Assembly (NCBI GenBank): GCA_002269645.1 | Contig: NIVC01000506.1 | Location: 1-64,000, forward strand | Reading direction: 5' to 3' | DNA: 64,000 nucleotides | DNA from: Macrostomum lignano | Taxonomy: Eukaryota | Part shown: piece after piece, positions 22,514-48,674 of the stretch | Layout of the letters: each line of letters opens with the position of its first letter | Position numbering within the stretch: position 1 is the first letter of the stretch | Notes under the pieces: model-generated | Database searches by the model: none | Seen by the model: the letters and a program-made list of their open reading frames with translations, nothing else | What the model was told of the DNA's origin: nothing | Translations under genes and position numbers: made by a program

Positions 22514-24630
22514 ATGCCGTCCGTGAACTGTCAGCAGTGGATTTCGATATTTGCCATCGCCCTCTCAGCAGCAGTGGCGGCTGCGGCAGTCGCTGAGGCG
22601 CCAATCAGCTGCAGCGGAGCCGGTAGCGCGGAGCAGCGAGCTGCCCAGCTGGTGTTCGGGCTGCTGTCCGCCTACGGTGACTCCGGCCGCTTTGTCCAAC
22701 CGGACATCGGTGGGCCAAGCGGCGGCTTCCGAGTGAACATGAGCTTCCAGATTTTGCACTTCTACGGCCTCGACGAGAGCGAGATCCTTGAGATCGGCGT
22801 CTGGGCCGCCTTCCTGTGGCGCGACGGTCGGCTGGCCTGGCGCTGCCCCGGGCTGGCGGTGCTGAAGCTGCCCGCCGACAGGATCTGGCGGCCCGATGTC
22901 GGCCTCAGCAACACCAAGAAGGACAACCAGTTCGACTTTCGGCTGATGAGCGCGCTGGAGGCGCTGGTGTACCCGGACGGTTCGGTGTACACCTACTACC
23001 ACCTGGTGACCAGCGTGGCCTGCCCTGTGGACGTGACCTTCTTCCCCTTCGACTCGCAGCTGTGCCGCTTCCAGTTCGGGCCGTGGACCAGCTACCGCGG
23101 CGGCTACCAGATCCACCTGCCGCCGGCCAAGGTGCGCATGGCCAACATCTCCAAGTTCGTCAGCGAGTGGGACTTGGCGGGCTTCGATATCCAGGCCAGG
23201 TGAGCAATTTCTTTCATGCAAAAGTTTTTTCCCGAGAAAGCGTGTGACACTTCCAGTTCTCACAAGGTGCATGCTATGAGCTGGAACTGGCACCAAGGCA
23301 CCAAGTTCATCAGCTTTTCAGCTCATCATTTCCTCAGCTTCCGTCCCACGAGGAGCTCGCAGGGAGCAGCATCGTATTTGCCACAGCCATGGACAGACAC
23401 ACTGATGCGGCCTTCAGTGACCACCATCTCGCCCGGATAAGGACAGACACACTGATGCGGCCTTCAGTGACCACCATCTCGCCCGGATAAGGACAGACAC
23501 ACTGATGCGGCCTTCAGTGACCACCATCTCGCCCGGATAAGGACAGACACACTGATGCGGCCTTCAGTGACCACCATCTCGCCCGGATAAGGACAGACAC
23601 ACTGATGCGGCCTTCAGTGACCACCATCTCGCCCGGATAAGGACAGACACACTGATGCGGCCTTCAGTGACCACCATCTCGCCCGGATAAGGACAGACAC
23701 ACTGATGCGGCCTTCAGTGACCACCATCTCGCCCGGATAAGGACAGACACACTGATGCGGCCTTCAGTGGCCACCATCTCGCCCGGATAAGGACAGACAC
23801 ACTGATGCGGCCTTCAGTGGCCACCATCTCGCCCGGATAAGGACAGACACACTGATGCGGCCTTCAGTGGCCACCATCTCGCCCGGATAAGTGCGCAGTT
23901 CCAGAAACGCTGGCTATAGCGCGCACAGACGCTAGGCTTAGAGCCGTGCACAGACCGGTAGGTTCTCAATGAGATCAGAGACACCGAAGTTCTGGTGTCA
24001 GCTTCAAAGCCCCGGTGAATACAAAGTACGCTCGTATATGCTCAAACTGGCACGATACCACAAAACTGTTTTATCACACAGCTGACGTCAATCTAGAGTT
24101 CAATGTTGGAGTGACAACTTCAAAGCTGGAGTGACACCGAGCCGCAAAACCCCAAAACCAACAGGCAGTACTTCGACGACAACGTGCAGCAGATCTGGGA
24201 CTACTTCGAGGTGCAGGTGGAGCTGCACAGGAGGCCCTACTACTACCTGTTCGTCATCGTGCTACCGTTCTTCATGCTGTCCATCACGGCCTGCCTGGTA
24301 TTCCTGGCTGACGAGCCCGGAGACCGAGTGAACATGTCCATCGCCATCCTGCTCACCATGACGCTGTACATCATGATCAGCAGCTCGAGTTCGCCCAAGT
24401 CCATGCAGACAATTCCGCTGCTGGGCATCTACATCATGGTGCAGATGGCGGTGCTCATCCTGCTCACCTTCTGCGCCATCTGGAGCCAGCTGCGCCCAGG
24501 CAGCGGCAGCCAGGCGGCTGCATCGCGCCGGCAGCGGGACGCGTTCTTGATGTACCTGTACATCGGCCTGACCCTGGCCAACGTGTGCGCCTGCATGCTG
24601 GTCACCCCGCTCACCAAGAGGATGATGTGA
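22514..24630 (+). CDS. Cys-loop (nAChR-like) ligand-gated ion channel subunit, non-alpha type, 383 aa; exons 22514-23199, 24165-24630
   Basis: Signal peptide, WRDGRLAW, IWRPDV, Cys-loop CPVDVTFFPFDSQLC, EWDL, pre-M1 RRPYYYLF and four hydrophobic segments. The phase-2 intron (AG|GTGAGC at 23199/23200; CAACAG|G at 24164/24165) gives 1152 nt in frame. Confidence 0.9.
23391..23890. repeat. Ten 50-bp tandem units in the LGIC intron
   Basis: GGACAGACACACTGATGCGGCCTTCAGTG(A/G)CCACCATCTCGCCCGGATAA x10; units 1-7 carry A and units 8-10 carry G at position 30. Confidence 0.98.
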
Positions 24631-25197: not shown

Positions 25198-25708
25198 GAA
25201 GGGGGTCACTTGCACAGGTGGACCAGCTCAGGGGTCACTTGCACAGGTGGACCAGCACGGGGGGTCACTTGCACAGGTGGACCAGCTCAGGGGGGTCACT
25301 TGCACAGGTGGACCAGCTCAGGGGGGTCACTTGCACAGGTGGACCAGCACAGGGGGTCACTTGCACAGGTGGACCAGCTCAGGGGGGTCACTTGCACAGG
25401 TGGACCAGCACAGGGGGGTCACTTGCACAGGTGGATCAGCACAGGGGGTCACTTGCACAGGTGGACCAGCTCAGGGGGGTCACTTGCACAGGTGGACCAG
25501 CTCAGGGTCACTTGCACAGGTGGACCAGCACAGGGGGGTCACTTGCACAGGTGGACCAGCTCAGGGGGTCACTTGCACAGGGGACCAGCACAGGGGGTCA
25601 CTTGCACAGGTGGATCAGCACAGGGGGTCACTTGCACAGGTGGACCAGCTCAGGGGGGTCACTTGCACAGGTGGACCAGCTCAGGGTCACTTGCACAGGT
25701 GGACCAGC
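25198..25708. repeat. 29-31-bp minisatellite built from the wnt5 C-terminal codons and stop
   Basis: Unit GGGGTCACTTGCACAGGTGGACCAGC(T/A)CA; its reverse complement contains CTGGTCCACCTGTGCAAGTGA (LVHLCK*). About 17 copies. Confidence 0.95.
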
Positions 25709-28700
25709 CGGGTCACGGGGCACCAGTCACACCGGACTCTGCAGCACCACTTGAATCGGCAGTCGCATTTCTCCGCCGTGGTGAACAACCGAGATTCGAA
25801 CCCGCGACCGCAGCAGAGGCTCAGGCAGCTGTGCGGGCCGCCGTTGGGCCGGTCCAGCCAGCACCGCCGGCCCCGAGTGCCTGGCAGTCCCCGGTTCGAA
25901 TCCGGCAGGCAGTAGTCGGGCGACTCGGTCAGGAACACCAGGCCGGCGCCGTCGGGCTTCCGGCTGCCGCGTCGGCGACCCCGCAGGCGACGCAATTTGG
26001 TGCCGCGGCGGGCGTCAAGGCGGACGCGCTCGGCCGCGGTGTACAGAGTCAGCAGGCGGTCGCCTGTGCGGCTGAACTGGCCGAGCTGCTGCCAGCAGGT
26101 GCGCAGAGAGCAGCTGCCGGAGAGCCCGTGGCATTTGCAGGCCACCTCAGCGGCGTTGAACACGGCCTGCAGTGGGCGGCGGGGAGAGCTGGGTGGGTGG
26201 CCCGCTTGCCAGTGGCCTGCTCGGTGTGGGACTGGCTTGGGAGAGGACGTTGGACAGAGGAACAGTCTGTCAGGACACCAGTCTGTCAGGACACCAGTCT
26301 GTGAGGACACCAGTCTGTGAGGACACCAGTCTGTGAGGACATCAGTCTGTCAGGGGACCAGTCTGTCAGGACACCAGTCTGTGAGGACACCAGTCTGTGA
26401 GGACACCAGTCTGTCAGGACACCAGTCTGTCAGGACACCAGTCTGTCAGGACACCAGTCTGTCAGGACACCAGTCTGTCAGGACACCAGTCTGTCAGGAC
26501 AGTAGTCTGTCAGGACACCAGTCTGTCAGGACACCAGTCTGTGAGGACATCAGTCTGTCAGGACACCAGTCTGTCAGGACACCAGTCTGTCAGGACACCA
26601 GTCTGTCAGGACACCAGTCTGTCAGGACACCAGTATGTCAGGACACCAGTCTGTCAGGACACCAGTCTGTCAGGACACCAGTCTGTCAGGACACCAGTCT
26701 GTCAGGACACCAGTCTATCAGGGGACCAGTCTGTCAGGGGACCAGTCTATCAGGGGACCAGTCTGTCAGGACACCAGTCTATCAGGGGACCAGTCTGTCA
26801 GGGGACCAGTCTATCAGGGGACCAGTCTGTCAGGGGACCAGTCTGTCAGGGGACCAGTCTATCAGGACACCAGTCTGTCAGGACACCAGTCTGTCAGGGG
26901 ACCAGTCTGTCAGGACACCAGTCTGTCAGGACACCAGTCTGTCAGGACACCAGTCTGTCAGGGGACCAGTCTGTCAGGACACCAGTCTGTCAGGACACCA
27001 GTCTGTCAGGACACCAGTCTGTCAGGACAGTAGTCTGTCAGGACACCAGTCAGGGGACCAGTCTGTGAGGACATCAGTCTGTCAGGACACCAGTCTGTCA
27101 GGCAGCCTACCCTCCTGCCGGCCTCATTATTGTGGAGGTTCATCAGCGCCCTGGCAAGACGGTCGCTCCGTCGCGGATGGCTGCCTTCAGTCTCGCGAGC
27201 GTCCACAAAAGTGCGCGCGAACGTGTAGCCAAACAGCAGGTCATCGCCGCAGCCGCCCCAGAGCCAGTCCCTGGGCAGGTTGTTCGGTCTCAGGGCCGTT
27301 GAGCAGCCGCAGGCGGCACCGGCTGGCCGACTGCCGTCCCGGCCGGCCTCGTCGCTGTCGACGGCGGCTTGGCGGCAGGCGCGGGCGACCGCGTGAGAAA
27401 CACCGGCTGCCGTGATGGCGTGGGCGAAGGCGGCCTCCCGGGTCACTGCAGCGGGAGAAGTCGCGGTGCATGCGTTTGCAAATCGTGAGAGGTCGCCTTC
27501 TAGTGAGGGGTGCAGAGTTGCATGCAGCTCAACGTCTGCACCCCGGGTTCGATTCCGTGGGCTCATCAGGGGCGATGCCCGTCTGCTTCAAACTTCTTAG
27601 TGACTATGCAAAGCTTTTTATAAGCAGTGTTTCGTTCGTAAAGGTTTGTTTCTTCCGTTGCTGCTTTCAAAACCAAAATGGGGGTCCGTAGCCCAGTGGT
27701 CTAGCGCGGTGCTCTGATTGCTCGATTCCAAGTGCAGTCACACTAGTTTGAGACAAATTGGAATCTCGGTTTGGCTCTGCTCGTGCCCAGCTTGAGGGCC
27801 AACCCCCAAGGCACAGTGAAGTGTACATGCCTAACGATAAATTAAGTCAGGGCCGCTGTACATTACTGTGTGAGTGTGTGCCTGTGCGTATGACTGGCAG
27901 TAGTGTCTCTCGCCGGTTGAGTGACAATGTCACTTAAAGTGCACCAGGGTCGCCCACAGCGTATACTAACTCTAACAAAATAAACTGCCGCTTCCACAAC
28001 AGGGGGCTCAAATTTGCTAGTCTACTTACAATAATGCGCTCGTATTAAGTAATCAACGCACATAAGTATAACAAATTATTAGCAGTAAAAGGACAATAAA
28101 AAAGAATAAAATATTGTCGTTTTGATACGCGTCATAAAATCAGAGGAGAATCACCTAAGTCTATCATGAGTATATTTGCGTCGCGGACATTGCAGCTTAT
28201 CAGAAAGTGTCATTGCCACAGTATTTTTACCAACAGCTTGAATCCATCCGATAACATTTGGTAGCCGGTGGGTTTCTCAGCACGTCCAGCTCGTACGAGT
28301 GAAGATGACGAACATCCAGATGAGAATTGCCGACAAGTGAAGAGCTGGGCTGTGCTGACGAATAGCATCTTTGCTGTGCAGCCTCCACACCTCGGCCTGT
28401 TTGCTTTGCACCAGATTCCAGCCGGTCTGCACCCGGTACTCCGGCAGGCCGAATAGTCGAGCCTCGGACTTGGTCACTGAAGCGGAACATTCGAAGGACG
28501 CCTTCCACGAGACCCACCAAGCCTCCTCCTTCTTGCTAGTGGCCCGAACTGTCAATGCGCTGCTTGAGTCGGTGCGGTTGCTGCTCAGCGCGATGCCCCT
28601 GGGGTCGCCGTCCAGCACGGAGATGCCGAAGTTGAGAGGAGAAACGCTGACCCAGTGCTGGCCAGGCTTGAACCTCTCGAGCAGGCGGAACCGGGGCACC

Positions 28701-31700
28701 AGCTCGACTGGCTCGATGCCGGAGTAGGTCACCGCGCAGCTCAGCGAGGCCGGCTCCGACTTCGGGTCGAAGTGCAGCGTCTCAGTGCTGACAGACTCGG
28801 CCGTGAACAAGGGCAGCGAGACTACTGACACGTGGTAGGTGTTCTTGATGACCCCAGCAATAATGGTGTACTTTCCAGCGTGCATCTCGGAGGTCAAGCC
28901 GACCAGATCGATGTTGCACGAATTGGGCGACACCGAGAAGAACCTGGAGCACGGAGGTCGGCCAGCACGTCCAGCGTGTTCGGAGAAGGAGCCTTCATTG
29001 CTGCAGTGGCTGCCTTCGAAGCCGACTTTAAATCGCAAATCATCGTTGCAAAACACCGGACACGACAGCGACATGCCGCGAAGGTGGGCGGGCAGCAGAA
29101 TCCACGAGGAAGTATCGTCCGTAGGCAGGAAGCAGGTATTTGCAAAAAGTCCCAGTGTTCTCAAATGGTTAGTCGAGATTGATCTTTTCGAGCGATGTGA
29201 ATGAAGGCCTTCGAGTATAGATCTGGTTTTCCCAATGTGAAACGTCAGATAGTAGGGCCACAGCTCTCCCACGACGGAAACATTGAGGCATACGTCATAA
29301 CCGCCTTCAACGTTCCAAACTGGATCCCATGAGAAACGATCATACCTATGGGTGCCGTGTAGAACGCCAGTGTCTAAGTCTAGAAAATAATTTATCAAAT
29401 TCTTAATCCTATTTGTGCTGATGGTTCCGCCGGCTCCAGCTGAGGTCATAACCACTACCGGTAGAGTCTGGCTGACAGCACCGCAGCTCCGGCTGTAGTA
29501 CACAGTCAGGGTAAGCAGGTTGCGCACCATCGGCTCCGCCTGCTTGATGACCTCAAGAACATTCTTGTGCAGAAAGTCAAGGCGGCTACGAGCCTTCATA
29601 TTTGGATAATGAACCCACCTAGCCATCGCGTAGTTCCGAGAGGTCAAATACCTGAACGCTCGGGGTGTCACAAAGCCAAGATATTCAATCCCTGGCGGCA
29701 CGGTCTCAGTAGAGACTTTGCCCAGCGCGTCAAAGTTGAAGACGAACAGGCTGGCGGACTCGAGCTCGCCCTGGTGAAAACTCAGTCTCAGTCTGAACTC
29801 CAGAGTGTGCCTGAGCGCTTGCTTAAACGGTACCTGGTTCTCCTGCGACAGAGTCAGGCGGTACATCGCATGGCTCACTCGCTCCAGCGTGAACGGTCTC
29901 AGCGGCCTGCAGTGCGTGCTGCTCGACACACCGGCATCCAGCAGAGCTTCATTGAACTTGGAGTCCGTGGACGAACACTTGAAGAGCAGTCGGACTGACT
30001 GCAGGCTCGCGTTGGCCCCCCTCGGGTCGGTGCGAAAATTGAGCGGCTGTCCCGCCATGAGCACGGAGACTTGCGGAGTGCCGCTGGGCCGCCAGTCCTC
30101 GCTAGACGGCAAGTAGTAAGTGGGCGCTTTGTGCGTCACGGACGGGTGCTGCAGCGCCGGCAGCAGGTCATCGTCAGAGAGGACTCGGTGCGCCAGAAGC
30201 CAGCAGGCGAGAAGGCAAGTCAGCGCTGTCAGGTGCAAGTCATCTGCTCTCATTCTATTTGTTGATATCACGAAAGTATTTGCCGTCTGTTTTTGATTTC
30301 AATTCCGAGCTGCTGGGCAGCGGGCAGTGTCGGGTTTGATGCCAAATTTGGGCACTGCCGAGTGCTCCCAGTCGCAAAGTATAGAAAAAATGCTGGTTGC
30401 CACAGACAGTTTTAGCTGCGGAGTGAAATTTTAAGCGTAAAATGTGAGCTCACGGAATTAATTAGAATAGAAAATAAGAGGTGTACACAAAATATCGCGC
30501 ATGCATCCAGTGGTGCTGCGAGTTTTACTTGTCTTTGAACAATCTTGACTTGGTCAGCCTTGGGAGTTGCATTGTTCTATAGATATTTGCATTGCTTCAC
30601 GTAAGGCAATAACTGCGGTTGTTTAACGCTGCTGACTCGGTCATAGACAGTTGTGGGCGTAATTTATTTAACAAAGCAACGGTAAAATAATAAACGCGAT
30701 AACAGTTTTGAGTTTTTTCATTCAAAACAGTTTGAATTTTCGATGCCGGTGAACCATCACTTAGAAAAAGTAAAAGAGCAGTTTTCGAACTTGCACTCTG
30801 TGAATATAGATTCCACGGAACTCGTGACACCGATTGATCGATTGGATATCGATTGGATTGCTGCCCACGTAGCAACCGCAGGTTCAAGTGATTCGCCGTA
30901 GGTAGGCTCAATTGCCGATGCTGAAGTTGACGACGGACCAGCACTGCTTGCAGACTTCACGAGAGCCTGGCCGATGGACGATGACGCCTCCCGTACGACA
31001 TTGTCACGTTTCCGTGATAGGTAGCGTCCGTCGCACAGTTGCTTCGTTTAGCAGCCCCCAGTAATGCACATTATGTCACTAAGTACAAAACCAGAGTCCT
31101 TCAGGTCAGCAATTCGGGTCACTTGAATACTATGACTAGTATAGGTCCTCGACAGGAGACACACTTTGCTCAGTCTTTGCATAATTGAGCCGAGCCAGTT
31201 GATGCCACGCACCTGCTTTGTTGAGAAGCGAACTACAGTATCCTTGTTTGGCATTGGTCTCGGAAAAAAGGTGTCATCCTTTGTTTCCGCGGGCAGTGAC
31301 GCAGAGTACAGCAGAATCAGCTCTCTCTGCTTACCGTAGATTCTCGCCTGCTTATTGACGAATGATTTAGCTTTATTTGGATCGGCGCTCTGGTTTTTCG
31401 TTGGCAGAGTCGGTAGCTCCAGATAGGGATGCCCATCAGAATCTACTTTGTCCACGAGAAGATCTCTCCTTCGTAGACTTTTTAGGTGTTCTTGGCCGCG
31501 CAATCTCAATGGTGTCTGTCTGTCTGTTATCGTCTAAATAGTACACACAGGCTCTTACAAGCTTCGATCTGACCAAGAAAAAACTTGTCTTTGGCCTCAA
31601 GCAACCGAAATTTCTCGTCTTTTTAGCGTTGAACAATCAGACTCGCTTTATAGTTGAACAATGATGGATTTTCAACGCTGATCAAAAGAGTACATCTATG

Positions 31701-34700
31701 AGACAATGTTGATGCGTATGTGGTTTGATCATAGACAATGATTAAGTTGTCTATACATTGCAGAGACTTTTTGATCCGACTGTAGAGCGTTACTTCCTGA
31801 TTTTTCGATTTTCTTGAAACTTTCGCAATATACCTAGCTGTTACCTGATATTCAGTCATAACTTATTCCAGGAAATTTTTTTGCAAACAGTCCCGGTTAA
31901 AAGGGATTTAGGGCAAAATGGTGAATTTACGACAGAAACGACAGTGGCACGACAAGCACGACAGTGATACGACAGAAACTATACGACAGTCATCACTGTC
32001 GTATGGCTGTACGACAGTTTACGACAGAGCTTTACGACAGTAAACCGAGACCTTGACCCACGAAACTTGTGTACGACAAGTAACGACAGTGGTCTGGGTC
32101 AATGACTAAGGACCTGGACCCACCTTGACCCACGACAGTGTCATACGACAATGTACGACAGTGATTTACGACAGTGCCCAAACACACCCCCACCCCTCCT
32201 CCCATACGACAGTGTCATACGACAGTGTACGACAGTGATTTACGACAGTGCCCAAACACACCCCCAATGGCATCTTAAGTGATAGTGATCTGAATTGTAC
32301 GAGCCGTAACTCCACCGAAGCCGGTCCCAAGCCCGGTTGTAAAAGGAGGAGGGGATTCCTGACAGCATGCTGCAAAATTTGTGCACCATGTGGTGGGATA
32401 CAATTTTCACACCGTAAACGTCTGGTACATAAATTCGTTATGGGGGAGAGAAGTACGGAACATGGGTAGGGTGTGCTGGGTCGTTATGGAAGTCTTTTAT
32501 AGTTCTTTTAAGGTTTCCTAGTGCTTTCTGTATGTAAATTGCAATGGAGGACTCCTCTGCGACAAATGTAAATTTAAAAGGGCAGTCAGTTAATTCAACG
32601 TTAAGTAGATCTACTTAGAAGTAAGGCAGCATAAGTGGCTCATTAGTTACTTTCTTTTTACCATGAAATGTTCATTGTTTTTACCAGCTTTGGGGAGAAA
32701 GCAGCCAATAGTTAGTCCATTCAATTTGTGTAAACGTAAGTTGTCTTTCAATTTTTTTCTAAACTTTTGTCATCCGTGATTAATAATTCATTGAACGGCC
32801 AATTAATATTTTCGCCTAAGTCATTCGTTTGGACCACGGTGGCAACTGTCTGCTGTGGGCAATTAAGCCCAAGCAGAGTCAATTTATTTTGAGCATTTGC
32901 ATGCTATAGAGTATTCGCAAGGTTCAGGTCTCGCATCTCAATTCTTTATGCTTGGCGGCACAGCTGCAAAATAAAAAGAGGTAACACAACGGACCAATAC
33001 CGGAGCTAGTTGCTCACGGCACATAATATCTAACACAACCATAAGGACATTGTGTTCGTTTATTGTGTTCCATCAAGAAACACAACAGTGTTTTTAGTAT
33101 GCATGGCGCTTTAGTGGCGGCAAAGTGGTGCGAAACTCTTATTGTCAGAGATTTAAGCATTTAGAAATCGATATTTGCGTGGGGTGGAGTTGCGCCTGAT
33201 AAACAAGAAGCGTGCAAGCTGATTGGCTGCAGAGCGACGGGGCAGGCATTGTACACTTGAGAGTCAGAGAGTTAAACGGTGTACGGCCAACAGTTACAAA
33301 TAGGAATGAAATGTTGTGTATTACGCATATGCTGTCACCCATTACAGCCTACGACACGCAATAATCATGGATGATCCCAATGACGTTGACGGGCTGCGGG
33401 ATTTCCAGCGTCGCGTTCGCAAGGCTATGGAGGCCAAGGCCCGAGTCGTTAAGCGGACTCGTCTCAGTCTGGAGCAGAGCATCAACGTGGTCACCAACGC
33501 TGCCGCTCTTATGGCGCCGCCGTTGACAGCGACGGCTGGCAACGTTCCTCACACTGTTGACAGTGCCGCCAGTTCTCTACAGGCTGACGCACCCTTTGTT
33601 CAGGTGATTTGGGATCCATTATACTGTTTTTCATCTTTTTGAGTTGATCATGACCGCAAGTACATTCGATCATGACCGTGTATTCGAATACCGTGCGTAC
33701 CCCCTAATTAGTAGCCCGTGCATTTTATTCAGTTCAAATCATCCATATGCCAATATTTGGCATGGCAATATGACAATGTTGCAATGAAAAAAGCTTTAAA
33801 CACAGTCCGATTCCGATACAGTTAATTTTTGTTCATTTATGTGCATACCTTTTAGTGCTCTGCACTGCAATGTATTATACATATTGAAAGTATATACAAC
33901 CGGCCTTCCTATCAGTAATTTACGAGGGCAGCCAACCAGCCAGCCAGGCATGACTGTCCTGATATGCCGTGAAAATTACATTATTAACTATTTTAGTATG
34001 GCACTGTCGTAGGGCACTGTCGTAGACTGTCGTACAGTACTGTCGTATGGTCACTGTCGTAGGGCAGTGTCGTACTCTGTCGTAGGGTACTGTTGTATGG
34101 TCACTGTCGTAGGGCACTGTCGTATACTGTCGTACTCTGTCGTAAGATCTAGGTGGGTCAAGGTGGTTGACCTAACAAAGTTGGGATGCGGCACTGCCGT
34201 ATTATGTCGTAAAAACGCCTGTCGTATGCTGACGAGGACTGTCGTAAAAGCTCTGTTGTATGGCTCTGTCGTACGACTGTTGTTTTTTTCAAACGGGAGT
34301 AATATTTAATTCGCTCATCACATTATCTGCCTGTACTGGATAAATTTTTCCGGTTATTCGCTACACGGTTTTAGCTGATTCTTTCTTCTTTCACTTGATT
34401 TGTTTGTCTCTTTGCAACTGCATCGTGAGCGTGGCGAATAGTTTTGAATTTAAAAAAGACAATTAAGCGTGCACACCTACTAAGACATCATTTGTTCCTT
34501 TATTCTGCAGACTGCTCCATATTTTATGCTCACACTAGTATCCTTTCACGCTCTCCATCGGTTAAATCTCTTCATATAAAAATCAAAACTCTGTCTGTGT
34601 GTCTGTGTGTGTACAATTTTGATCGCTATGGACTCCCAAACTGCTCAGCCAAATAACACCAAATTTTGCACCCACCCTAAAATCACTACGAACTCACGGA

Positions 34701-37700
34701 GAACGTCTTAGGCTACCATTAAATATCAATTTGAGTCTTCCTACCTAAAAGTGCAAAAAAGCGCGATTTTTTCACTAAATCCTCCATAGCGCCGCTCCAC
34801 TTCTACTGATCCTCTTTAAATTTCACACAATCAATCTTCAACTATTTTGACACAATCGTGTAAAATTTTGAGTCTTAAAGTTGATTCCGAACGGCGCTGT
34901 GCACTTTTAAAGTTAGGCTGTTTTTGTCAGCCTCTCTTTCCCGATCTGGGCGGCCCAGATGTGTAAAAAGGTTTCAAAATTAACTAACTTCGGCTGCCAT
35001 AAGTTTGCTCTACGTAAAGCGATTCACTTCAAACTTGACACAATTCTTCATTGACTCATTCCCTGTCGAAATGTAAAGTTTCAACTCTGTACCCCAATCA
35101 TAACAGAAACTGTAAGCATGCGAAGTTTTTCTGCTTTTTCTGTTGTATGTGCCACTCACTCACTCATTCGAGTCATTCCCCCAGAGCCAGACCAAGGGTC
35201 AGGCGATAGGGCTGAATGTACATAGCAAATGTACAGTGTTTTGGAATAACTTTTTTAAAGCCTTCTATGCACCCACGTGGAGAGGCTACGTTTAGCCACC
35301 ATAAACATTTTAAGTTTCTCTTCAATCAAGGTTACTTTAAAATTTAAATGGCCTTCTAAGAAATGCGTATTTCCTTGGTTGTTTGTTTGCAGTGGAGCTG
35401 AAGATACACAAATTCCTTTCAGGGTCGCAAATTGGCAAGAAAGATGACATTATCAAAGCATGAGAACAACGATGAGAGTAGTACGTCCCACAAACTGGTC
35501 TTCCAAGCAGGGATGGGCAGAATTTTACCTCAAAGGCCAGATAAAGAATCCAGCTCTTGGCTGAGGGGCAGATGAGAGTGGAAAGAAGGAATAGACTATT
35601 CAAAAAGAGAGGAGAGGCGAGAGAGGGGGTAAGAGATAAGATAAAAGATAATAGGAGAGATGAGGGAGTGAGAACGATGAGAGAGAGAGAGGGGAGAAAA
35701 GGGAGGAGAACAGGAGAGAGGAGAAGTGAGATGAGAGAGGATAGAGTAGAGAGGAGCGAGTTAAGAGGAGAGAGAAGAGAGTAGAGATGGGGGAGCAGAA
35801 AGCTGCAGATGAGAGGAGAGAGCTGAGGAGACAGGAGAGAGGAAAGAGATGAAAGGAGAGATGAGAAAGTAAAGGGAAGAGAGAAGAGATAAGGTTGTAG
35901 AGATGAGAGAGGTGTAAGGAGAGATAAGAAAAGAGAGATGAGAGATAAAGGAGGAGAGTGGAGAGTGAAGAGAGAAGAGATGAGACAAGAAAGGGAGAGA
36001 AGAAAGGAGAAAGGAATGTGAGGAGTCAAAAGAGGGGAAGAAAAGAGTACAGAGGAGAAAGGTGAGAAAATAGATGACAAATGAAAAGAGGGAGGGGGAT
36101 GAGAGAGCAGAGACAAGAGTGAACAGACGAGAGATGGGAGAGTAGAGAGAACAAAGGAGAGATAAGAGAGAAAAGGAGAGAGTTGAGAGAGGGGAGAGTG
36201 AGAATGAGAAGAGGGGAGAAAAAAGAGAGAGTAGAGAGCAGAGGAGAAAGGAGAGACGAGAGAGCAGACCAGAGAGAAGAGAGGAGAGAGAAAAGAATAG
36301 AGAGGAGTAGGAAGATACGAGAGGAGAGAGGAGAGAGGAAAAAAGAGACGAGATGAGAGGAGAGACGAGGGACGAGAGAGGAGAGATAGGAAACAGAAGA
36401 GAAGATAGAAGTTTCAAAGGATCCAAGGGACGTAGGGAGAGTCAGAGCAGAGGCCAGAGTTTGCCAATACATGTTTTAGAGTCAGGCAGACATTGCCTGA
36501 CATTCTGCGCAGCACCCCAGCCAACAATATCAAATGTTTGCCTCAAATCCTAATTTTACACGATTGTACTCCATTTTATGTTTACCTCTATCCTACTAAC
36601 TATTAACAAGTCTTTGTTTGAGTATGGCCTCAGATTTCAGAATACATGAAAATTAGTTCCGGGTATTGGAATTCCGGGTTTCAACAGCTTGTCTTACCTA
36701 TAACTACCTACTAATAGTTCCATAGTAGGCCTCAATTGAAGTTGAAAATTAGGTTGCTAAATCAGGCCCTACTCAAGAATCCTCGACTCCCTCGTACCCC
36801 CTGTCCTGGTCCGAAAGAGTAGTTGAACCTCAGTGCATCTTGAAAGCGACAAGCCACAGGACAGAACCAATGCTAAAAGATTTGTTGTCCAAACTTGAAA
36901 GGGAAAGTGCAAGCCTTCACTGACCATGTTTCACGAAGAGGGTTGCCCGGAGGGGAGAAATTTAGAAAATGGGATTCAATGTGAATTCAAGGCTCTCAAA
37001 CTGAAGCGGTGCCCGATTGAGCGGTGGCTATCGAATCCCACTGGGTTGAGCATGTTCGCTGAAGGCCTTCCTTTTGCGTTTCATGTCTGAAAACAAATTT
37101 TTGGCTTTGTTTTCGTTCTTCGACTTATTCGCTTCCAAAATCCGCTCAAGTTCTCTAATCAGCCTCATAAAGAACCCCAAAACCACAGATTTAAAACCCG
37201 TCTGGCCGAGTACTGGCTAAAACTAATATTTTCGAGTACTACACGTACCCGAACCTTCAAAAAGTTTTGCGGTATGAGCCATAGGAAAATGCTCATAGGA
37301 TTAGGAATGAGAATTAGGCTGGGCATATGGTCGTGTCACCTGGTCGTTTCACCTGGTCGTGTCACCTGGTTGTGTCACCTGGTTGTGTCACCTGGTCATG
37401 TCACCTGGTCGTGTCACCTGGTCGTGTCACCTGGTCGTGTCACCTGACAGAGGCTGGACGGCAACGAGAGGCCCCAACGTTGCGGACGCTGGCCTTGGTC
37501 TAAGGCAACCAACGTAGCTCGGCTCACACCGTCAGCAGCATCAATGATCTCAGCAGCACGAACATCGACAATCAGCAGATCAGCTCAGGACAGCAGGACC
37601 TGTGCATCAGGAGACCGGAAGTTCATTGTGCTGGCCACGCCTAATGGGATGCACAAGCGAAAATCGGAAAAGTTCAGCCTGCTGATGTCGGTTTGCACTG

Positions 37701-40700
37701 AGAGCATCAGGGTCACACGACAACTGCTGACATCAACGCCCAATATCTGCGACAGCGATACTGCGTCACTGGTGGAGCTGCTGAATGACGCACTACGGCC
37801 GGGTCTGATCTAGCAAGAGTTCACATGGAAACTGCATGCAGGCGTTCAAATTTTACCCACCAAGTCGCTTCACTAAGACGTTCGACAAAAGGATATGCAT
37901 TAAAAATACAATCTGTTTCGCAGGTGATTGCTCAGTGTGAGACAGTGAGAGAGCAGTGTGGGGCATGCCGCATGTAAATTTAGCAACCACACTCGGTTTG
38001 CGTGTTTCCCCATAGCAAGGACGTCTCATCAGAGACAGCAGCAGCAGCAGCACCTGAAACAGCCGTGGGCTGTACGTGCGTTCCAGCTGGAGGGCGTATT
38101 TCAAGGTCTGCCAGGTGGAACCGGCGCAGTGAATCTCCAGGAGGTCAACGGTGCAGACCGGCGCAGCGATAAAGTCGCTCACTGCCTCCCTGAATTTAAA
38201 GGCTCAACAGGCCCGCGTGTACTGAGTTGCAAGTGTGCTTGTATGCGCTAGTCTCTAGGGCAACAATCGATATGCCGTATTTACCCTGCGTACCAATCTA
38301 ATCAGCTCTGTGCATTAGCCTACACGTGTATGCAACATCCGCATTCTGTTAGAACGCGTCCGCCAGAGTCCATGCATCTCTAGTGTTTTCAAGCTGGATA
38401 GTCCTGACCACCGCCAGGAAGAGAACGACACAGCCTCGATGGCGTCAGATTTGCACGGCTCGCTGTGGAGCCACTCCGGGTGGCAATCCACCCGAGCACT
38501 GCGGCTTGCAACACGGCCACTCCAGCATGAAAACAAAACACGCTGAACCTGGAGCTGCATCCCACAAAATGTCTGTGTGAAGCTGGATGTTTGGTCTGGC
38601 CCGTACTGCGCTCCAGTGGGGATGAAAAAGTTTTTGTGTTGCTCAGTGCGCAAGCACCTCTCTGCCAGAAACCATGCCAAGATGTCGAGCAAATCGAAAC
38701 TTCGAAAATTTCAAGGATAGGAGCTAAGATTCCAGCAAATTTGGGTGCCAACTTATGTTGTATTCAGAAGAATTACATTAAACAAGGAGACTGGATTCGG
38801 CAACTACACAATACTCCGGGACTAATTCAAGGGGAAAGGATGAAAATGGTGAGCCACCGGCAACTAAAGAAGCTGTTCTTCACTAACCAAGAGAAGTCAT
38901 GAAAGAGAAATAAGAGAAATTATAAACTTGAGTAATCCGAATTTTCACTCCAGTTCCCATGAATGATTGCCGAAAAGTCTGATCGAGTAGGAGCAGGCAC
39001 TCCAAGTTTGGAATTGTGATACCCAACTGATTGGAAAAGATAAAGATCGAACCCACTGTAAGTGAATTTCTGCATTCATTCAACACCTGGCATTCATCTT
39101 AAATAGACTTGCAAACCTGTCACAATAGCATCAACAACAGACATGAGTACATAGGCACCAGCGCAGGGAGAATTCCGGCACTTTACAGGAAGCCTTTGTC
39201 ATAACGTTGAAATTTATTTGTACGACACTTGGATCGAATTAAATTTTAGGGCAGCGCGTATTCACCAATAGCTGGTCAAATCTATGCTAAATTTTAGTTA
39301 CAATCCGTCATAGAAAAACAATGGCTATTATAAGTGACACATAAATGAACCTATCTTTTCAAAAATTAGCTAATTAGGTGATAAGTAGAATCTCAAATTT
39401 CGTAAATTAGCTACCGATTGCAGTCTGATTCAAGACTGATACAAAAAAAGTTAGAGCACACACACCAAAGCATTTCGTAGGGTCCTTAACATGCAAAGCA
39501 GTCACTGAGAACAGTGCAGCTGACAGATAAAAGAACGAGCACTGCACACAGTCTCAGAGTAGATGGAGGCCCGCTAGTGGCGGCGCGCTCCGTTTGCCTC
39601 AGGTCTTTAATGAAGGCCAGGCTCCACGTCTCCTGCACCCGGTACTCCGGCAGGCCGAATAGTCGAGCCTCGGACTTGGTCACTGAAGCGGAACATTCGA
39701 AGGACGCCTTCCACGAGACCCACCAAGCCTCCTCCTTCTTGCTCGTGGCCCGAACTGTCAATGCGCTGCTTGAGTCGGTGCGGTTGCTGCTCAGCGCGAT
39801 GCCCCTGGGGTCGCCGTCCAGCACGGAGATGCCGAAGTTGAGAGGAGAAACGCTGACCCAGTGCTGGCCAGGCTTGAACCTCTCGAGCAGGCGGAACCGG
39901 GGCACCAGCTCGACTGGCTCGATGCCGGAGTAGGTCACCGCGCAGCTCAGCGAGGCCGGCTCCGACTTCGGGTCGAAGTGCAGCGTCTCAGTGCTGACAG
40001 ACTCGGCCGTGAACAAGGGCAGCGAGACTACTGACACGTGGTAGGTGTACTTGATGACCCCAGCAATAATGGTGTACTTTCCAGCGTGCATCTCGGAGGT
40101 CAAGCCGACCAGATCGATGTCGCACGAATTGGGCGACACCGAGAAGAACCTGGAGCACGGAGGTCGGCCAGCACGTCCAGCGTGTTCGGAGAAGGAGCCT
40201 TCATTGCTGCAGTGGCTGCCTTCGAAGCCGACTTTAAATCGCAAATCATCGTTGCAAAACACCGGACACGACAGCGATATGCCGCGAAGGTGGGCGGGCA
40301 GCAGAATCCGCGAGGAAGTTTCGTCCGTAGGCAGGAAGCAGGTATAAGTAAATCTGCTTTTAGATGACGGTGTTGTTTGGATTGGCTCGACTGTTTTCGG
40401 CTCAGGTGTAGTAGTTGTAGTTGCAGTGGTTGTCGTAGCTGGAAGTTCAGTTAAAGGGCGTGTTCTACGACTATTATTCGGTCTAATCCTAGAAAATGTT
40501 TCATATTTGGCAGCCTCTCACCATGTACATACGGCGCTGGTCGGGCTTCCCGCTCAGTTGATTCGACCAATGGGGAGGTGGCACCATAAATGCCGCTCAG
40601 CATCTCAGCATCTCGCTCCTCAAAAGCTGAACCAGGCGGTAAAGCAACCCGGCGACCTCGGGATTTATATTTAGATGGTGTAAAATCAACTGTCTTTACC

Positions 40701-43700
40701 AAGACAAAGGTTGAGAAATAGGGCCAGATCCCGCCTTTGACGGAGATGCTCAGGCAGCTTTCAAAAATGCCTTCACGTTTCCTAAGCTGGTCAAGTATCA
40801 CATTACGCGCCTCAAAAGTATATGTGAAGTGAAGCATGCCATTGTCAGGATTGAGTAAATAGTTCCTGAAGGCTTTGGTAGAGCTGGAGCTAACAGTTTT
40901 ACCCACTCCAGCTGTGGCCACAACAATTCGAGGTTCGCTGGGAACGCTGCAATTCCGGCTGTAGTAGAAGCTCAGGGAAAGCAGGTTGCGCACCATAGGC
41001 TCCGCCTGCTTCAGGACGCTGACGAGCTCACTACTAAGTATTTGGAGGCTGCTGTTCGATATTCTCCATTCAATATTAACAGATGACACTACTTCAACGT
41101 TCTGATGGCGCAGATACTTTCTTCCATTATATGTCGTAAATGCGTGGATTTCTATTTTCCTAGGCCCCCAATATCCTTCTACGATCCTATTAGGTAGCTT
41201 CGACAGCGCGTCAAAGTTGAAGACGAACAGGCTGGCGGACTCGAGCTCGCCCTGGTGAAAACTCAGTCTCAGTCTGAACTCCAGAGTGTGCCTGAGCGCT
41301 TGCTTAAACGGTACCTGGTTCTCCTGCGACAGAGTCAGGCGGTACATCGCATGGCTCACTCGCTCCAGCGTGAACGGCCTCAGTGGCCTGCAGTGTGTGC
41401 TACTCGGCACACCGGCATCCAGCAGAGCCTCATTGAACTTGGAGTCCGTGGACGAACACTTGAAGAGCAGTCGGACTGACTGCAGGCTCGCGTTGGCCCC
41501 CCTCGGGTCGGTGCGAAAATTGAGCGGCTGTCCCGCCATGAGCACGGAGACTTGCGGAGTGCCGCTGGGTCGCCAGTCCTCGCCAGACGGCAAGTAGTAA
41601 GTGGGCGCTTTGTGCGTCACGGATGGGTGCTGCAGCGCCGGCAGCAGGTCGCTCCTAGAGACAGTATAGGAGACGGCGTCCACGGCTGCTGCACTGATCA
41701 GAGGCAAGCAGACGAACAGGAAACGCAGCTCTGCGCGCATTTCCGAGAGAATTCAGTTTTGTAACTGATCGGATTTAAAAAAAATTAAGTTGTGCTTTTA
41801 GAGATCTGCAAAGTTTTTTAATCGGCTTTTAGCCGCAGCGGTTAGAAATCTCCCCTTGCCATAGAGTGGCTTTTGAGCGGCTGCATCTGATTTGCCTTAA
41901 GTAGCTTGAACAGACGTACTCGTTGTAGGTCACAGTACTCGTAATTGTTGTGTAGTGATTAAAAATATATAGATTTTGTTGAGCAGTACAAGCATTGGAC
42001 TTATAGAATATTAATAGATTATTTTTTAGCTTCTCTTCCTTATATTCTACTGTCAGCAGAGAATCAGATAAATGTACGATGTTTTGTGGCGGTTCAATAA
42101 TACATGTATACTGGTGCGGTCCATAACTCCATTTCAGGTGTGCGCTCAGGTGTCTCCGCTGTTACACTTTACCGTCTCCTGGCCTTAAAGTCTCCTTCCG
42201 GAGCCTGCAAGGCAGCAACCATTCTCCAACCTCGAAATCGCAAATGAGTGATTAAATCAGAAGCCTGAGCAACTGCTCACAATGTATGATTAAACCAATT
42301 CAAAACGGCTAGGACACAACTTCCCAGACGGGAATTGTTCACTGAGTGATTCTAGGGATTTGAGTCATAGGCATTTTCCACTTGGCGCAAGCCAAATGAT
42401 GGCCATAGACTAAACGTCTGGAACGAAAAATTAAGCGGAACAGTCTGAAATTACCATAGACGAAACATGTTAAATGAAGTTGTGGATACTCTGCAGCAGA
42501 GGATACATGTTCCTGTTTCTTCTGTTTGCTCTAACCTCTATTCATGCCACTCATACGAATGATAAGTTGGTCGAATTTGCTGATTGAAAGCATTGACGGC
42601 TTGAATGGAAATGAGGTCAACTTTCTCAGCGACTTGAGTATGGGTGGACGTGACGAGGCGGATGACGAAGAGTTGATGGAGTTCATCCGATTCATTGAAT
42701 GCGGTAACGATGATGCTCTGCCACCACTGCCAAGCAAAGAAGAGGCTTGCCCCGAGGATCCCATCCGGAACAAACCATGCAATTCGGCCGATGTGAGTGT
42801 AACGTCTAAAGACATTTCTTCGGCTGACGTATCCGCAATGGATACTGCTGTGCTGCAGGCTGTTACCGTTTTCGTATGTATACAATCTGTTTATTCAGCT
42901 TTGTTGTATTGAAAAAAAATCCTCGCAAACGCATTGATACAGGAATATACAGATTGCTCATGTGCAAATGGGTATATCCAAATATAACCCGTTGGGTATA
43001 TCCAAAGATGGGGGGCGGCTTGACCATAGACTATTCGCAGATAAGCAATCTGTTGTATTCCTGTTTCAATGCCTGAAAGGCGCGCAAAAATTTGCTTAGT
43101 TCACAATTTCCGTCGACGCAATCGTTTGTGGCCCAAACGAAACTAGACACAATTTGTAAGAATAAATATTTTTCTCAAACTTGGATCAAACTCTCAACCA
43201 CCCCAGCAGTTGCTCAGAAGATTGAAACCATATACATAAAGTGGGTGCGAAAATGCCCTTATTTTATTCAAGGAACAAACAAGGCTTGGAAGTTTCGTCT
43301 ATGGCCAGAGTTAATTCATATCGATGAGAGTCTCTTCTTAGTCACAGATCATTTCCACAAGATGCGAACAATGACTTTTGAGACATTTAGCTTGAGCATT
43401 TCTTTTCTCAGGCTTGACAGTGAGGAGGCGTCGCCGCCCATTCCACTAATTCCCTCCGATCCTTCAGTGCCCTACCCTCCGATCCTTCAGTGCCCTACCC
43501 TCCGATCCTTCAGTGCCCTACCCTCCGATCCTTCAGTGCCCTACCCTCCGATCCTTCAGTTCCCTACCCTCCGATCCTTCAGTGCCCTACCCTCCGATCT
43601 TTCAGTTCACATCGGTATACTGTACTTTGTGTACTCACTACTGAGCACTGAGCAGGTACATGTATAAAGTACTTGTCGCAATGCGGCAGCCATGCGGTTT

Positions 43701-46700
43701 TGGAACATATTTTAAAGAGGGCGATTGGTGGGAGGGCACATTGCACATACATTTTTGTAAATCTAAGGGCTCCCTAATTCCTGATGTTATGTCTGTTTGA
43801 GATGTTGTGACAACCAGGCCAATATTCAATTCTGTGCTGGAAGGCCAACAGTTTGAAAATGCTCGAATTTTCAACTGATTCAAACATTGCGCAACTCGAA
43901 TATGCCCGAATCCTGGGGTTTAGAATCCCAGAATCACACTTGTCCGTATTCTAAATCCTAGGATCACAATTGTCCGGGATTCTAAATCCTAGGATCACAA
44001 TTGTCTGGGATTCTAAATCCTAGGATCACAATTGTCTGGGATTCTAAATCCTAGGATCACAATTGTCCGGGATTCTAAATCCTAGGATCACAATTGTCCG
44101 GGATTCTAAATCCTAGGATCACACTTGTCCGTATTCTAAATCCTAGGATCACAATTGTCCGGGGTTCTAAATCCTAGGATCACAATTGTCCGGGATTCTA
44201 AATCCTAGGATCACAATTGTCTGGGATTCTAAATCCTAGGATCACAATTGTCCGGGATTCTAAATCCTAGGATCACAATTGTCTGGGATTCTAAATCCTA
44301 GGATCACAATTGTCCGGGATTCTAAATCCTAGGATCACAATTGTCCGGGATTCGATAATCCTAGGATCACAATTGTCCGGGATTCGATAATCCTAGGATC
44401 ACAATTGTCCGGGATTCGATAATCCCGGGATTGACCATTGAAGACTTGAAGACAAATCTAATTATTAATCTAAACCTGTAAAGTCTAAAGCAATAGAGGC
44501 CAATTCCTCATTAATTGTTTCCGATCGCAGCGCTTGCTTGCCAGACGGGAGTCAATCATTGTTCATTTGAACTCTCCCTCTATCTCAAACCCAGCTAAAA
44601 TCAGGGGGTCTCGACCTTGCGCAGATCAGCAGCCCCCTATTCGAAAGACCTTATTCTCGGCACTGTCCAGGACACCCTTTAGATGCCCAGCATAGGGGTG
44701 GTGACAAAACTACTTTAAGCAGTCCCTGCCTTGACCATCCTTGACCGTAGTTGGGATTAGAACAGTGGGACCTTGCTATCGGACCACAACCCAATCAAGC
44801 TACCAACTCTCCCCAGGGCGGGTGCCCCCTGGGAGGGTGAGGTCTGATCCTCTTCTACCCTGGCATCAGTACCTCGGGCATTAGCTCTGTAAGCTATCAC
44901 TCCCCAGGTTACATCACAGTCAAGTGTGATTCTCCTGAGCTGATACCGACATGTAAAAGCACGTCTATTACGCCAGCTCGTACACCACACTCCAATTCAG
45001 AGCTCATTGTCAGTTTCTTGTTTGCAAATATTTTGTTCTGTTCTGCTTTACTATTGGAAGGATTTAAAATCAGATTAGATGGCTTCGTACACCAAAATTG
45101 CACCAACAAAGATTAGAAACTTTTTTAATCCCTGGGTCCCAGGATTCCGACGAATTGAGCCGGGATCCCGGGATTGGCAAAGTCCGGGATATCCCGATCC
45201 CAAAATAGCCTTCCCTAGGCAAGACCAATCAGTTAATTTTCTGGATCTCTTGGCTGCCTCCTTCAGTTCCTATTGGCGCTGTCTCTTTATTCTTTTAGCT
45301 GACGGCATTTTAGTGATTTTGGTTGCAGCGCCAGCAGCGGCTAAAGTCTTGGGGATTGCGGCAGACTCGGAATGTCGATCAGAGACGCTAAAGAAAAAGG
45401 GCAAAACACTAAAAGCACTGGGCGTAGGCACATTAGATTAAAAAACTGTAGTGGAATGGGATTGAGAACAACATGAACTATGATTTCTACATACCCCATT
45501 GAGGGTTACGGAGCCTATACTATTTAACCAAGCGGTGATTAGGAGGGGGGCATGAAAAGAAAGGAAGGCTTGTCGCTTGCGGAAGGAAGCACAAGCCATG
45601 TGCAAACCCGTACCCACTGGCCAAGCTGTACATTCATCATTCTTACATGTACATTGATCTCTAGGGTGTGCATAGAGGTGCCCTCTCGCTCCAGCTTGCA
45701 TCCTTGGCTCCCAAGACTTAGAAAAGCCAAAGCCCAAAACCCCAACACACATGTAGGATCATGCTAAAAAGTGCGGGGGGGCTCCAGACCCCCATGCCCC
45801 CAGGGTTACGACACCCCTGCGCATAACGATTTTAAGGCATGTTGTGAACAACGAGTAAACAGTGCTCAATAGTTTATATGATGTATACTCACTCATTTGA
45901 CAAGTGAGCACCGTGTACATCGCACGCTGTAAAAGATATCAATAGCTATCAATGTCTGGAATTTGGGCCAAACGTTTTTGCAATTTCACTCGCCATAATT
46001 AGCTGGCACCATGAAAAAAGGTCGGCATTGAAGTGGCTGCCGCTGCACACCATCTGCAGCTTGTTAGACAAGCTCTGAGCACAGGGCAGGGCGGGACAGT
46101 CGCGGCTCCCCTGCGCTCTGATTCTTACCCTCCGACTGCCGCCTCCAGCTCCGCCCTGGAGTGTTTTAAAGTGTTAATGGAAGCCCCCGACAGTGCTAGG
46201 AGAGGCAGATTGCTGCAGCACAGCCTGTCATGGGCGCTGGAACACAAGCGGTCTGGAGTGGCAGCACCGGAGCCCCAGCTGCTGTTAACAACGACTCGCT
46301 CAGGGCGGAGTGACACTCTGGCGAGTCTCTGAGAGAGGCCGGGCAAGTGGCGGGAGCGGCAGAGCCCCTATACCACTCGAGAGAAGCCTCAGACCCGAGC
46401 CTGACAGCTCAATTCAATGCTTATAAGTCCTGCTCAGCCTCACAGGTTAATTGAAGCGCGCAGTCCAATTGCTTTGTTAAAGCATGATATAGCGAAATAC
46501 AAACAAGCTGATGGTTTTACAGCAAGGTTACAATATTGTCAGTGTCTAATGCCTGTGACCTCCGCTTACCTACCTACCTGTATGTCAGCTCTCCAGCTTC
46601 CAGTTGGGTGATTCTAGGTCAAATAAACCAATCAGGTCGAATCTCGTAAATCATGAACCGCTTTAAATCAACTGTACCATAACCTGTCAAGCAGGTGCTA

Positions 46701-48082: not shown

Positions 48083-48674
48083 ATTTACCCTGAGACATGC
48101 AGGTGATTTACCCTGAGACTTGCAGGTGATTTACCCTGAGACATGCGGGTGATTTACCCTGAGACATGCAGATGATTCACCCTGAGACATGCAGATGATT
48201 TACCCTGAGACATGCAGATGATTTACCCTGAGACATGCAGGTGATTTACCCTGAGACATGCAGATGATTCACCCTGAGACATGCAGATGATTCACCCTGA
48301 GACATGCAGATGATTCACCCTGAGACATGCAGATGATTCACCCTGAGACATGCAGATGATTCACCCTGAGACATGCAGATGATTCACCCTGAGACATGCA
48401 GATGATTCACCCTGAGACATGCAGATGATTTACCCTGAGACTTGCAGGTGATTTACCCTGAGACATGCAGATGATTCACCCTGAGACATGCAGATGATTC
48501 ACCCTGAGACATGCAGATGATTCACCCTGAGACATGCAGATGATTCACCCTGAGACATGCAGGTGATTTACCCTGAGACATGCAGATGATTCACCCTGAT
48601 ACATGCAGATGATTTACCCTGAGACATGCAGATGATTCACCCTGAGACATGCAGATGATTTACCCTGAGACATG
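48083..48674. repeat. 23-bp satellite (TTTACCCTGAGACATGCAGATGA), left arm flanking the gypsy element
   Basis: Direct reading; the same unit resumes at 53785-54689. Confidence 0.97.

Follow-up and report, generated by a model that had tools for sequence, protein, structure and literature searches.

Gene conversion in the flanking domains of two tandem surface-protein genes of Macrostomum lignano with a divergent second domain

In a stretch of 64,000 nucleotides (nt) of the Macrostomum lignano genome (positions 1 to 64,000 of scaffold NIVC01000506.1, assembly Mlig_3_7; hereafter the window) we studied two genes, gene 1 and gene 2, which encode predicted surface proteins and whose DNA is near-identical in two blocks and strongly divergent in the remaining parts. 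Both genes are on the minus strand with 9 kb between them, gene 2 being the upstream one, and all positions are collected in Table 1. Based on the list of open reading frames (ORFs) and an AlphaFold model, gene 1 encodes a signal peptide, four predicted immunoglobulin (Ig)-like domains, a linker with the motif RSKR and a hydrophobic C-terminal end. The annotated protein of gene 2 (P0002) was reproduced exactly once its single intron was removed, and the coordinates of gene 2 in the GenBank record are those of the window. The protein of the gene 1 ORF gave matches to Macrostomum lignano only in a search of 5.8 billion proteins. The GenBank gene models derive from transcript assembly guided by RNA sequencing (RNA-seq) (PMC5730564), and therefore both genes are probably transcribed. 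The gene identifiers of the pair were not found in the literature and the supplements of PMC5816591 in which we looked for them.

Comparison of the two loci by blastn (word size 11, E ≤ 1e-3, 4 kb around each gene) gave exactly three matches, namely an N-block that covers domain 1, a C-block that covers domains 3 and 4, and a short island within domain 2; nothing else in the flanks of either gene matched. The C-block is 99.16% identical, with 6 mismatches in 713 gap-free nt, and codon analysis gave 0.006 synonymous (dS) and 0.010 non-synonymous (dN) substitutions per site and 98% amino-acid identity; five of the differences change the protein (D380E, W384R, M394I, N447D and N471Y), one is silent, and an extra N/Y difference was found at codon 372, just beyond the edge of the block. 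The N-block is 97.99% identical (9 mismatches in 447 nt), with dS 0.073, dN 0.012 and again 98% amino-acid identity. For the middle part (amino acids (aa) 179-345) dS was 1.30 and dN 0.57, with an identity of 39% in amino acids and 55% in nucleotides. The linkers are 33% identical, and the signal peptides (21%) and tails (28%) are at the level of unrelated sequence. Silent sites are thus saturated in the signal peptide, middle, linker and tail, and near-identical in the two blocks. The longest identical run measures 304 nt, as compared to a maximum of 53 nt when the differing sites were shuffled 10,000 times (P ≤ 1e-4). The initial annotation of this DNA had described about six, mostly amino-acid changing differences in the C-block, an N-block of about 98% identity, a divergent middle that keeps its protein scaffold and listed motifs, and unrelated signal peptides, tails and flanks; our analysis agrees with this description on every point, and its block coordinates lay within 1-9 nt of the blastn edges. 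The 58-nt island uses the same codon at 13 of its 14 conserved residues, against 26 of 48 in the rest of domain 2 (p = 0.011), and is possibly an old micro-tract of conversion. The DNA of domain 1 and of domains 3-4 was overwritten repeatedly by non-allelic gene conversion, and the signal peptide, domain 2, linker and tail stayed unconverted long enough for their silent sites to become saturated.

Polyploidy is recent in Macrostomum lignano, and most loci are present three times in its assembly, at ~98% identity (PMC10733133). We recovered two further copies of the locus: L001 (NIVC01001099.1), which has gene 1 alone and is 99.8% identical, and L003 (NIVC01000952.1), which has both genes and is collinear with the window across ~30 kb at 96-99% identity. 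The spacer between the two genes is 6.6 kb long in the window and 2.2 kb in L003; part of the additional sequence is a CT-rich low-complexity stretch that yields long spurious Ser/Leu ORFs. In a five-sequence alignment of the window, L001 and L003 copies of the two genes, six sites of the N-block split gene 1 from gene 2 in every copy, so this block groups by gene. In the C-block, five sites within a sub-tract of the window have one state in both window genes and another in both L003 genes, all of them silent and at third codon positions. The paralogues of one locus differ there at 6 and 4 sites, and the same gene across loci at 8 and 10 sites; the paralogues are thus closer to each other within a locus than across loci in the C-block, but not in the N-block. 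The site patterns of the two blocks differ (Fisher test, p = 0.015). Grouping by gene makes the N-block tract the older one, and this block was last homogenised before the three subgenomes parted and not since. Grouping by locus at the five silent sites is the signature of concerted evolution, and part of the C-block underwent conversion again once the subgenomes had parted, as an independent event in one or more subgenome copies. The pattern fits conversion of a single locus at that stage as well as conversions at both loci that ran in opposite directions. The L001 copy of gene 1 has a 47-bp deletion in the C-block (L001 position 6513), and the L003 copy lacks 1 bp within a stretch of four C, which could be a consensus error; both deletions break the reading frame.

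It could be argued that purifying selection alone has held the N- and C-terminal domains identical without any exchange of DNA, as the domains encoded by both blocks are folded and conserved in the family described below. However, selection that acts on the protein leaves silent sites free to change, and dS was 0.006-0.073 in the blocks and above 1 in the adjoining parts; the locus-grouped sites are all third codon positions, and the same domains are only 19-35% identical to those of other family members. We consider this explanation practically untenable. A related concern is that the blocks are an artefact of collapsed or cross-polished copies, since the assembly is a draft, the three subgenome copies are ~98% identical and 93% of the read pairs of Macrostomum lignano map to more than one place (PMC10733133); the possible consensus error in L003 points the same way. 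An artefact of this kind is extremely improbable all the same: the mosaic is in frame on two independently assembled scaffolds for this pair and on a third scaffold for the second pair described below, the six N-block differences between the genes recur in both subgenome copies, and majority-rule errors would wipe out locus-specific variants rather than make them. Polishing might lift an identity of 97% to 99%, but never one of 55% to 99%.

The base composition of the two genes follows the same borders. The GC content at third codon positions (GC3) of the N-block, middle and C-block was 0.81/0.56/0.78 in gene 1 and 0.79/0.51/0.78 in gene 2 (p < 1e-5 for each). Such a contrast within the gene was absent from three control genes, namely the unconverted long forms of the family P0009 (0.54/0.51/0.49) and P0019 (0.48/0.50/0.42) and the singleton short form P0037 (0.86/0.83/0.90). 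High GC3 by itself is no proof of conversion, because the singleton short form has a GC3 of 0.83-0.90 throughout, and only the within-gene contrast is informative. The rise of GC3 in converted tracts over the middle of the same gene was 0.22-0.28 in this pair and 0.18-0.20 in the second pair. Raised GC3 has been used likewise as an argument for conversion in the protocadherin clusters of fish (PMC1852091).

A second mosaic pair was found on scaffold NIVC01000068.1 (locus L005), where P0010 lies 4.4 kb downstream of an annotated paralogue of 705 aa. The N-block of this pair is 100% identical over 493 nt and its C-block 95.6% identical over 607 nt, whereas the middle shows 36% amino-acid identity with saturated dS, and the signal peptides and tails are unrelated. 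GC3 of the N-block, middle and C-block is 0.58/0.40/0.59. The middle domains are 36-39% identical within pairs and 15-21% across pairs, and the sparing of domain 2 therefore arose or persisted separately in each pair. For the same reason we consider the descent of both mosaic pairs from one ancient pair unlikely. However, the linker of the upstream gene is long in both pairs (82-97 aa; that of gene 2 is Thr-rich) and that of the downstream gene short (~26-30 aa), and this shared order could be a trace of a common ancestral pair or convergence. The tandem pairs of long forms diverge evenly (45/48/53/45% identity), and the mosaic is confined to the short-form pairs. For the third short form (P0007/P0037) no tandem partner was found within 10 kb. 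The proposal of the initial annotation that conversion acts on the constant domains is supported by the contrast in silent sites, the variants shared within a locus, the GC3 values and this second pair.

The same mosaic would result if a whole gene had been duplicated recently and its signal peptide, middle with linker, and tail had then been replaced from other family members, several of which are available as donors. This requires one duplication and at least three separate replacements in each of the two pairs, in comparison to two conversion tracts. No annotated protein among the 5.8 billion searched has the middle domain in common with either gene, and no other representative exceeds 32% identity. 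The flanks show no DNA similarity, and the two blocks differ in age (dS 0.073 and 0.006). We therefore regard duplication followed by replacement as very unlikely.

The two proteins belong to what is apparently an undescribed, Macrostomum-restricted family of secreted, membrane-attached surface proteins with four predicted Ig-like domains. A HMMER scan of 1.84 billion representatives gave nine hits (clusters), all from Macrostomum lignano and with P0010 of the second pair among them; the distant relatives were found by this full scan only, and a word-indexed search with the family profile gave just the two known clusters. The family consists of short forms of 630-720 aa, which end in a hydrophobic stretch, and long forms of ~900 aa, which have a transmembrane helix and a Bravo_FIGEY tail (Pfam E down to 5.8e-15; above threshold in P0008 and P0009). 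Bravo_FIGEY, with its FIGQY motif, is the Pfam family of the ankyrin-binding tail of L1, neurofascin and NrCAM. Homology within the family spans all parts of the protein including the middle domain, in which Cys257 and Cys322 are invariant in 22 sequences. Pfam assigned no family to the proteins of gene 1 and gene 2 at E ≤ 1, and in the long forms the matches to Ig_2 and Ig_3 were sub-threshold, with no Ig or fn3 above threshold. Searches of PDB sequences with two profiles gave nothing below E = 0.48, the matches being chance-level ones to streptavidin and single Ig domains. The only relatives of the genes are adhesion-molecule-like proteins with the L1-type ankyrin-binding tail, and no result links the pair to an immune, allorecognition or gamete-related role.

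The AlphaFold model of gene 1, made with a 22-sequence alignment, has a mean predicted local confidence (pLDDT) of 66 and a predicted template modelling (pTM) score of 0.68. It shows four beta-rich domains (aa ~45-172, 180-345, 375-483 and 500-616) and a disordered linker (aa 346-372) that contains RSKR. The edges of the blocks and of these predicted domains lie only a few residues apart, although gene 1 has no intron. The top Foldseek match was neurofascin-155 Ig1-6 (7ok5_A, E = 1e-10, template modelling (TM) score 0.38/0.42), and further matches were the homophilic horseshoe of neurofascin Ig1-4 (3p3y, target TM 0.54) and sidekick-2 Ig1-4. The isolated model of domain 2 matched nanobody and V-type Ig domains weakly (E = 6e-3, TM 0.41-0.48). 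On these models the variable part is predicted to correspond to Ig-like domain 2 of the four. The homophilic dimer of neurofascin and TAG-1 is formed by the edge of Ig2 (PMC3406286).

Each protein has a single R-x-[KR]-R motif, RSKR at aa 354 in gene 1 and RGRR at aa 361 in gene 2, in a linker of low model confidence. The furin-type site that the initial annotation had placed after the middle domain is therefore present in both proteins and nowhere else in them, and P0004 and the gene 1 copy of L003 retain it. Judging by this motif, a furin-type convertase probably cleaves the two proteins after domain 2, and the variable domain may be shed, as the initial annotation had proposed. By inspection, gene 2 ends in ...[31 protein letters not shown] and gene 1 in ...[22 protein letters not shown]. 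The FIGQY/Bravo_FIGEY tail was absent from both genes in the Pfam search, and these short hydrophobic ends suggest that the proteins are probably attached to the membrane by a GPI (glycosylphosphatidylinositol)-like or short hydrophobic tail. Another model of gene 2, P0006 (A0A1I8GLB3), has the UniRef name 'Macrophage-expressed gene 1 protein'. We rejected an identity as MPEG1/perforin-2, as Pfam found no MACPF domain and the top Foldseek matches included no perforin-like fold. The names of other old models of family members (EGF-like, RNA helicase, NRXN3, protein kinase) are just as unrelated. Similarly, a viral or retroelement envelope, to which the combination of signal peptide, furin site and anchor had pointed, was excluded: there is no fusion-protein fold, the matches in the viral structure library were only multi-Ig proteins (TM ≤ 0.25), and the pair has no mobile-element setting, its flanks being unrelated and the locus collinear between subgenome copies.

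We favour the explanation that the pair consists of old tandem paralogues, in which domains 1 and 3-4 have been homogenised by conversion and domain 2 has been spared by selection, and we estimate its probability at about 0.72. The two genes would exchange DNA wherever similarity permits. Exchanges over domains 1, 3 and 4 would be tolerated by the shared scaffold and then fixed, and conversions reaching domain 2 would be removed by selection, each version of domain 2 having its own binding partner. The outcome would be a pair of surface proteins that share their scaffold and differ in the domain used for recognition. Alternatively, exchange into domain 2 may no longer happen, the similarity being too low. 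We infer that selection is the reason for the escape of domain 2, because the pattern recurs in two pairs, because the block edges of the first pair coincide with domain edges, and because the middle domain is not poorly conserved among the long forms.

In comparisons between subgenome copies, the variable part (domain 2 and linker) had 11 non-synonymous and 1 synonymous changes, and the blocks, with shared sites counted once, had 7 and 13, respectively (p = 0.003). Purifying selection clearly acts on the blocks, whereas for the variable part the data fit either relaxed constraint or diversification. These values also suit a different course of events, in which conversion did take place, but domain 2, being weakly constrained, had diverged early on to a similarity too low for recombination, without any selection to keep it apart. 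The paralogue dN/dS of the middle is ~0.44 and thus below 1, the changes between subgenome copies fit neutrality, and divergence is even over loops and core. Across the short-form pairs the middle is the least conserved part (15-23% identity, other domains 23-35%), and the weakly constrained signal peptide, linker and tail escaped as well. Against a purely neutral escape stand the loss of exchange in the same domain of two pairs whose middles are closer within than across pairs, and the position of the block edges of the first pair, which are at predicted domain edges within one exon. Moreover, the middle of the long forms is as conserved as the rest (34-48% and 26-57% identity, respectively) and so is not intrinsically unconstrained. 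On balance we consider a neutral escape rather unlikely.

Several observations weigh against sparing of domain 2 by selection, or against parts of the picture given above. The 11:1 ratio of the variable part is compatible with neutrality (p = 0.18), and a dN/dS of ~0.44 gives no sign of pervasive positive selection in domain 2, where selection is a matter of interpretation. Divergence of domain 2 was not faster in the predicted loops (35% identity, as compared to 41% in strands and helices; not significant). Of the two properties that the initial annotation had offered for this domain, great age thus agrees with its dS of 1.30, whereas positive selection is not demonstrated by these values. 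The C-block of the second pair begins ~35 residues later than that of the first, and the edges are therefore similar but not identical. No sequence method ties any domain significantly to Ig or L1 families, and confidence in the structure models is modest (pLDDT 66), with domain 2 alone reaching only E ~6e-3. Two of the three subgenome copies of gene 1 have a broken frame, which leaves the window copy as the sole intact one. The evidence for expression is indirect, as RNA-seq reads map to several near-identical copies, and Mlig_3_7 is an error-prone draft assembly, the genome itself having most of its loci in triplicate (PMC10733133).

Selective sparing of domain 2 could be taken further, in that the short-form pairs may form a small flatworm recognition code, in which selection keeps domain 2 distinct or diversified and conversion keeps the scaffold co-adapted. 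We regard this extension as doubtful. If true, it would be a gene-duplication counterpart of Dscam and protocadherin diversity and could be a means of recognising self and non-self, tissues or gametes in an animal without the classical systems.

Paired Siglecs offer one comparison. Siglec-5/14 and Siglec-11/16 are neighbouring Ig-superfamily genes in which some domains are >99% identical through continuing conversion and other parts differ; their ligand-binding domains are homogenised and their signalling tails differ. In the Macrostomum lignano pair, by contrast, the putative binding domain is the part that is kept different. The analogy to Dscam1 of arthropods is one of function only: it has a constant Ig scaffold with variant internal Ig domains (Ig2, Ig3 and Ig7) that set homophilic specificity, and Dscam dimerises via Ig2-3. 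However, Dscam1 makes thousands of variants by alternative splicing of one gene, whereas here two genes make two variants.

The closest known case is the regional conversion of clustered protocadherins; the process is known and the family described here is not. Regional gene conversion has been described in the clustered protocadherins of fugu, zebrafish and human (PMC1852091; Noonan et al., 2004, as cited there). The extracellular cadherin (EC) domains EC4-EC6 are >99% identical including silent sites and have raised GC3, and EC1-EC3, the putative specificity part, are spared (PMC1852091). Both systems consist of tandem paralogues for single-pass, adhesion-type surface proteins with one large exon, and in both conversion is limited to a part of the ectodomain with raised GC3 and spares the putative specificity part. 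The differences are that we found pairs and not arrays of tens of genes, a predicted Ig-like and not a cadherin fold, an internal spared domain with homogenised tracts on both sides, and no shared constant exons. The L1 family (L1CAM, neurofascin, NrCAM and neuroglian) has the Bravo_FIGEY tail in common with the long-form paralogues, its neurofascin Ig1-6 and Ig1-4 horseshoes are the best matches to the predicted head of gene 1, and Ig2 is its homophilic contact. Unlike L1CAM, with six Ig and several fn3 domains, the Macrostomum lignano family has no Pfam Ig or fn3 domain above threshold; its long forms measure ~900 aa in comparison to ~1,250, and genes 1 and 2 are without the transmembrane-plus-FIGQY tail. 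A relationship to L1 is suggested by the tail motif of the paralogues and a model of moderate confidence.

The system is a compact example of concerted evolution limited to certain domains, replicated internally by two pairs and three subgenome copies; the animal became polyploid recently, and conversion before and after the genome duplication can be separated at single silent sites. The long forms of the family reuse an L1-type ankyrin-binding tail. Transgenesis and RNA interference are available in Macrostomum lignano, so that the predicted partner specificity of domain 2 is directly testable. Whole-length alignments of these genes give wrong trees and orthology calls.

Table 1. Positions of the two genes, their blocks and other features. 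Positions are those of the window unless another sequence is named.
Feature	Position	Strand	Details
Gene 1 (P0003)	28277-30253	minus	single exon, 658 aa; exact protein in NCBI annotation of NIVC01000506.1
ORF containing gene 1	28277-30271	minus	
Gene 2 (P0002, BOX15_Mlig012689g1)	39486-41740	minus	two exons, 723 aa
Gene 2, exon 1	40522-41740	minus	
Gene 2, intron	40439-40521	minus	GT-AG, 83 nt
Gene 2, exon 2	39486-40438	minus	
N-block, gene 1	29723-30169	minus	domain 1, aa ~29-178
N-block, gene 2	41204-41650	minus	counterpart of 29723-30169
Variable part, gene 1	29140-29722	minus	domain 2 (aa 179-345) and linker; RSKR at 29183-29194
Variable part, gene 2	40346-41203	minus	domain 2, linker (40346-40660) with RGRR (40649-40660), intron, Thr-rich stretch
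C-block, gene 1	28427-29139	minus	domains 3 and 4, aa ~372-609
C-block, gene 2	39633-40345	minus	counterpart of 28427-29139
Short island in domain 2	29488-29545 and 40954-41011	minus	[11 protein letters not shown]...YYSR; 91.5% identity
C-block sub-tract	28811-28973 (gene 2: 40017-40179)	minus	locus-grouped sites 28973, 28922, 28919, 28823, 28811
Deletion in L001 copy of gene 1	28607-28653 (window equivalent)		47 bp
Deletion in L003 copy of gene 1	28696 (window equivalent)		1 bp
Spacer between gene 1 and gene 2	31487-38105		
CT-rich low-complexity stretch	~35.3-36.5 kb		in spacer
Second pair (L005 = NIVC01000068.1:93064-115094)	3441-5558 and 10001-12031 of L005		705 aa and 676 aa
MFS transporter exons	7777-9258	minus	
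DEG/ENaC channel exons	14164-14880, 16878-17984	minus	
16-bp minisatellite	26263-27102		53 copies
Wnt-family exon	27107-27449	minus	ORF 27006-27566
LTR-retrotransposon pol ORF	48660-51923	minus	
PNMA/gag-like ORF	52132-52866	minus	
23-bp minisatellite	48083-48674, 53783-54689		around the LTR element
Other minisatellites (examples)	23391-23891, 25200-25708, 43924-44425, 46749-47186, 56399-57225		

Other features of the window were also recognised. Exons of a DEG/ENaC (amiloride-sensitive) channel and of a major facilitator superfamily (MFS) transporter are present, and the old model P0014 fuses a helicase with the third short-form member of the family and the N-terminus of an ENaC. A pol ORF of a long terminal repeat (LTR) retrotransposon encodes protease, reverse transcriptase and RNase H and also a DnaJ domain above the Pfam threshold, with a weak PNMA/gag-like ORF upstream of it; the DnaJ domain is unmentioned in the paper on heat-induced LTR elements of Macrostomum lignano. 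The LTR element is missing from the collinear L003 and is embedded in a 23-bp minisatellite. Minisatellites are unusually dense across the window, with repeat periods between 16 and 92 bp and arrays 0.3-0.9 kb long, and their array lengths vary between subgenome copies. One of them, with a 16-bp period, directly adjoins an exon of the Wnt family (Pfam wnt, E = 2.6e-23).

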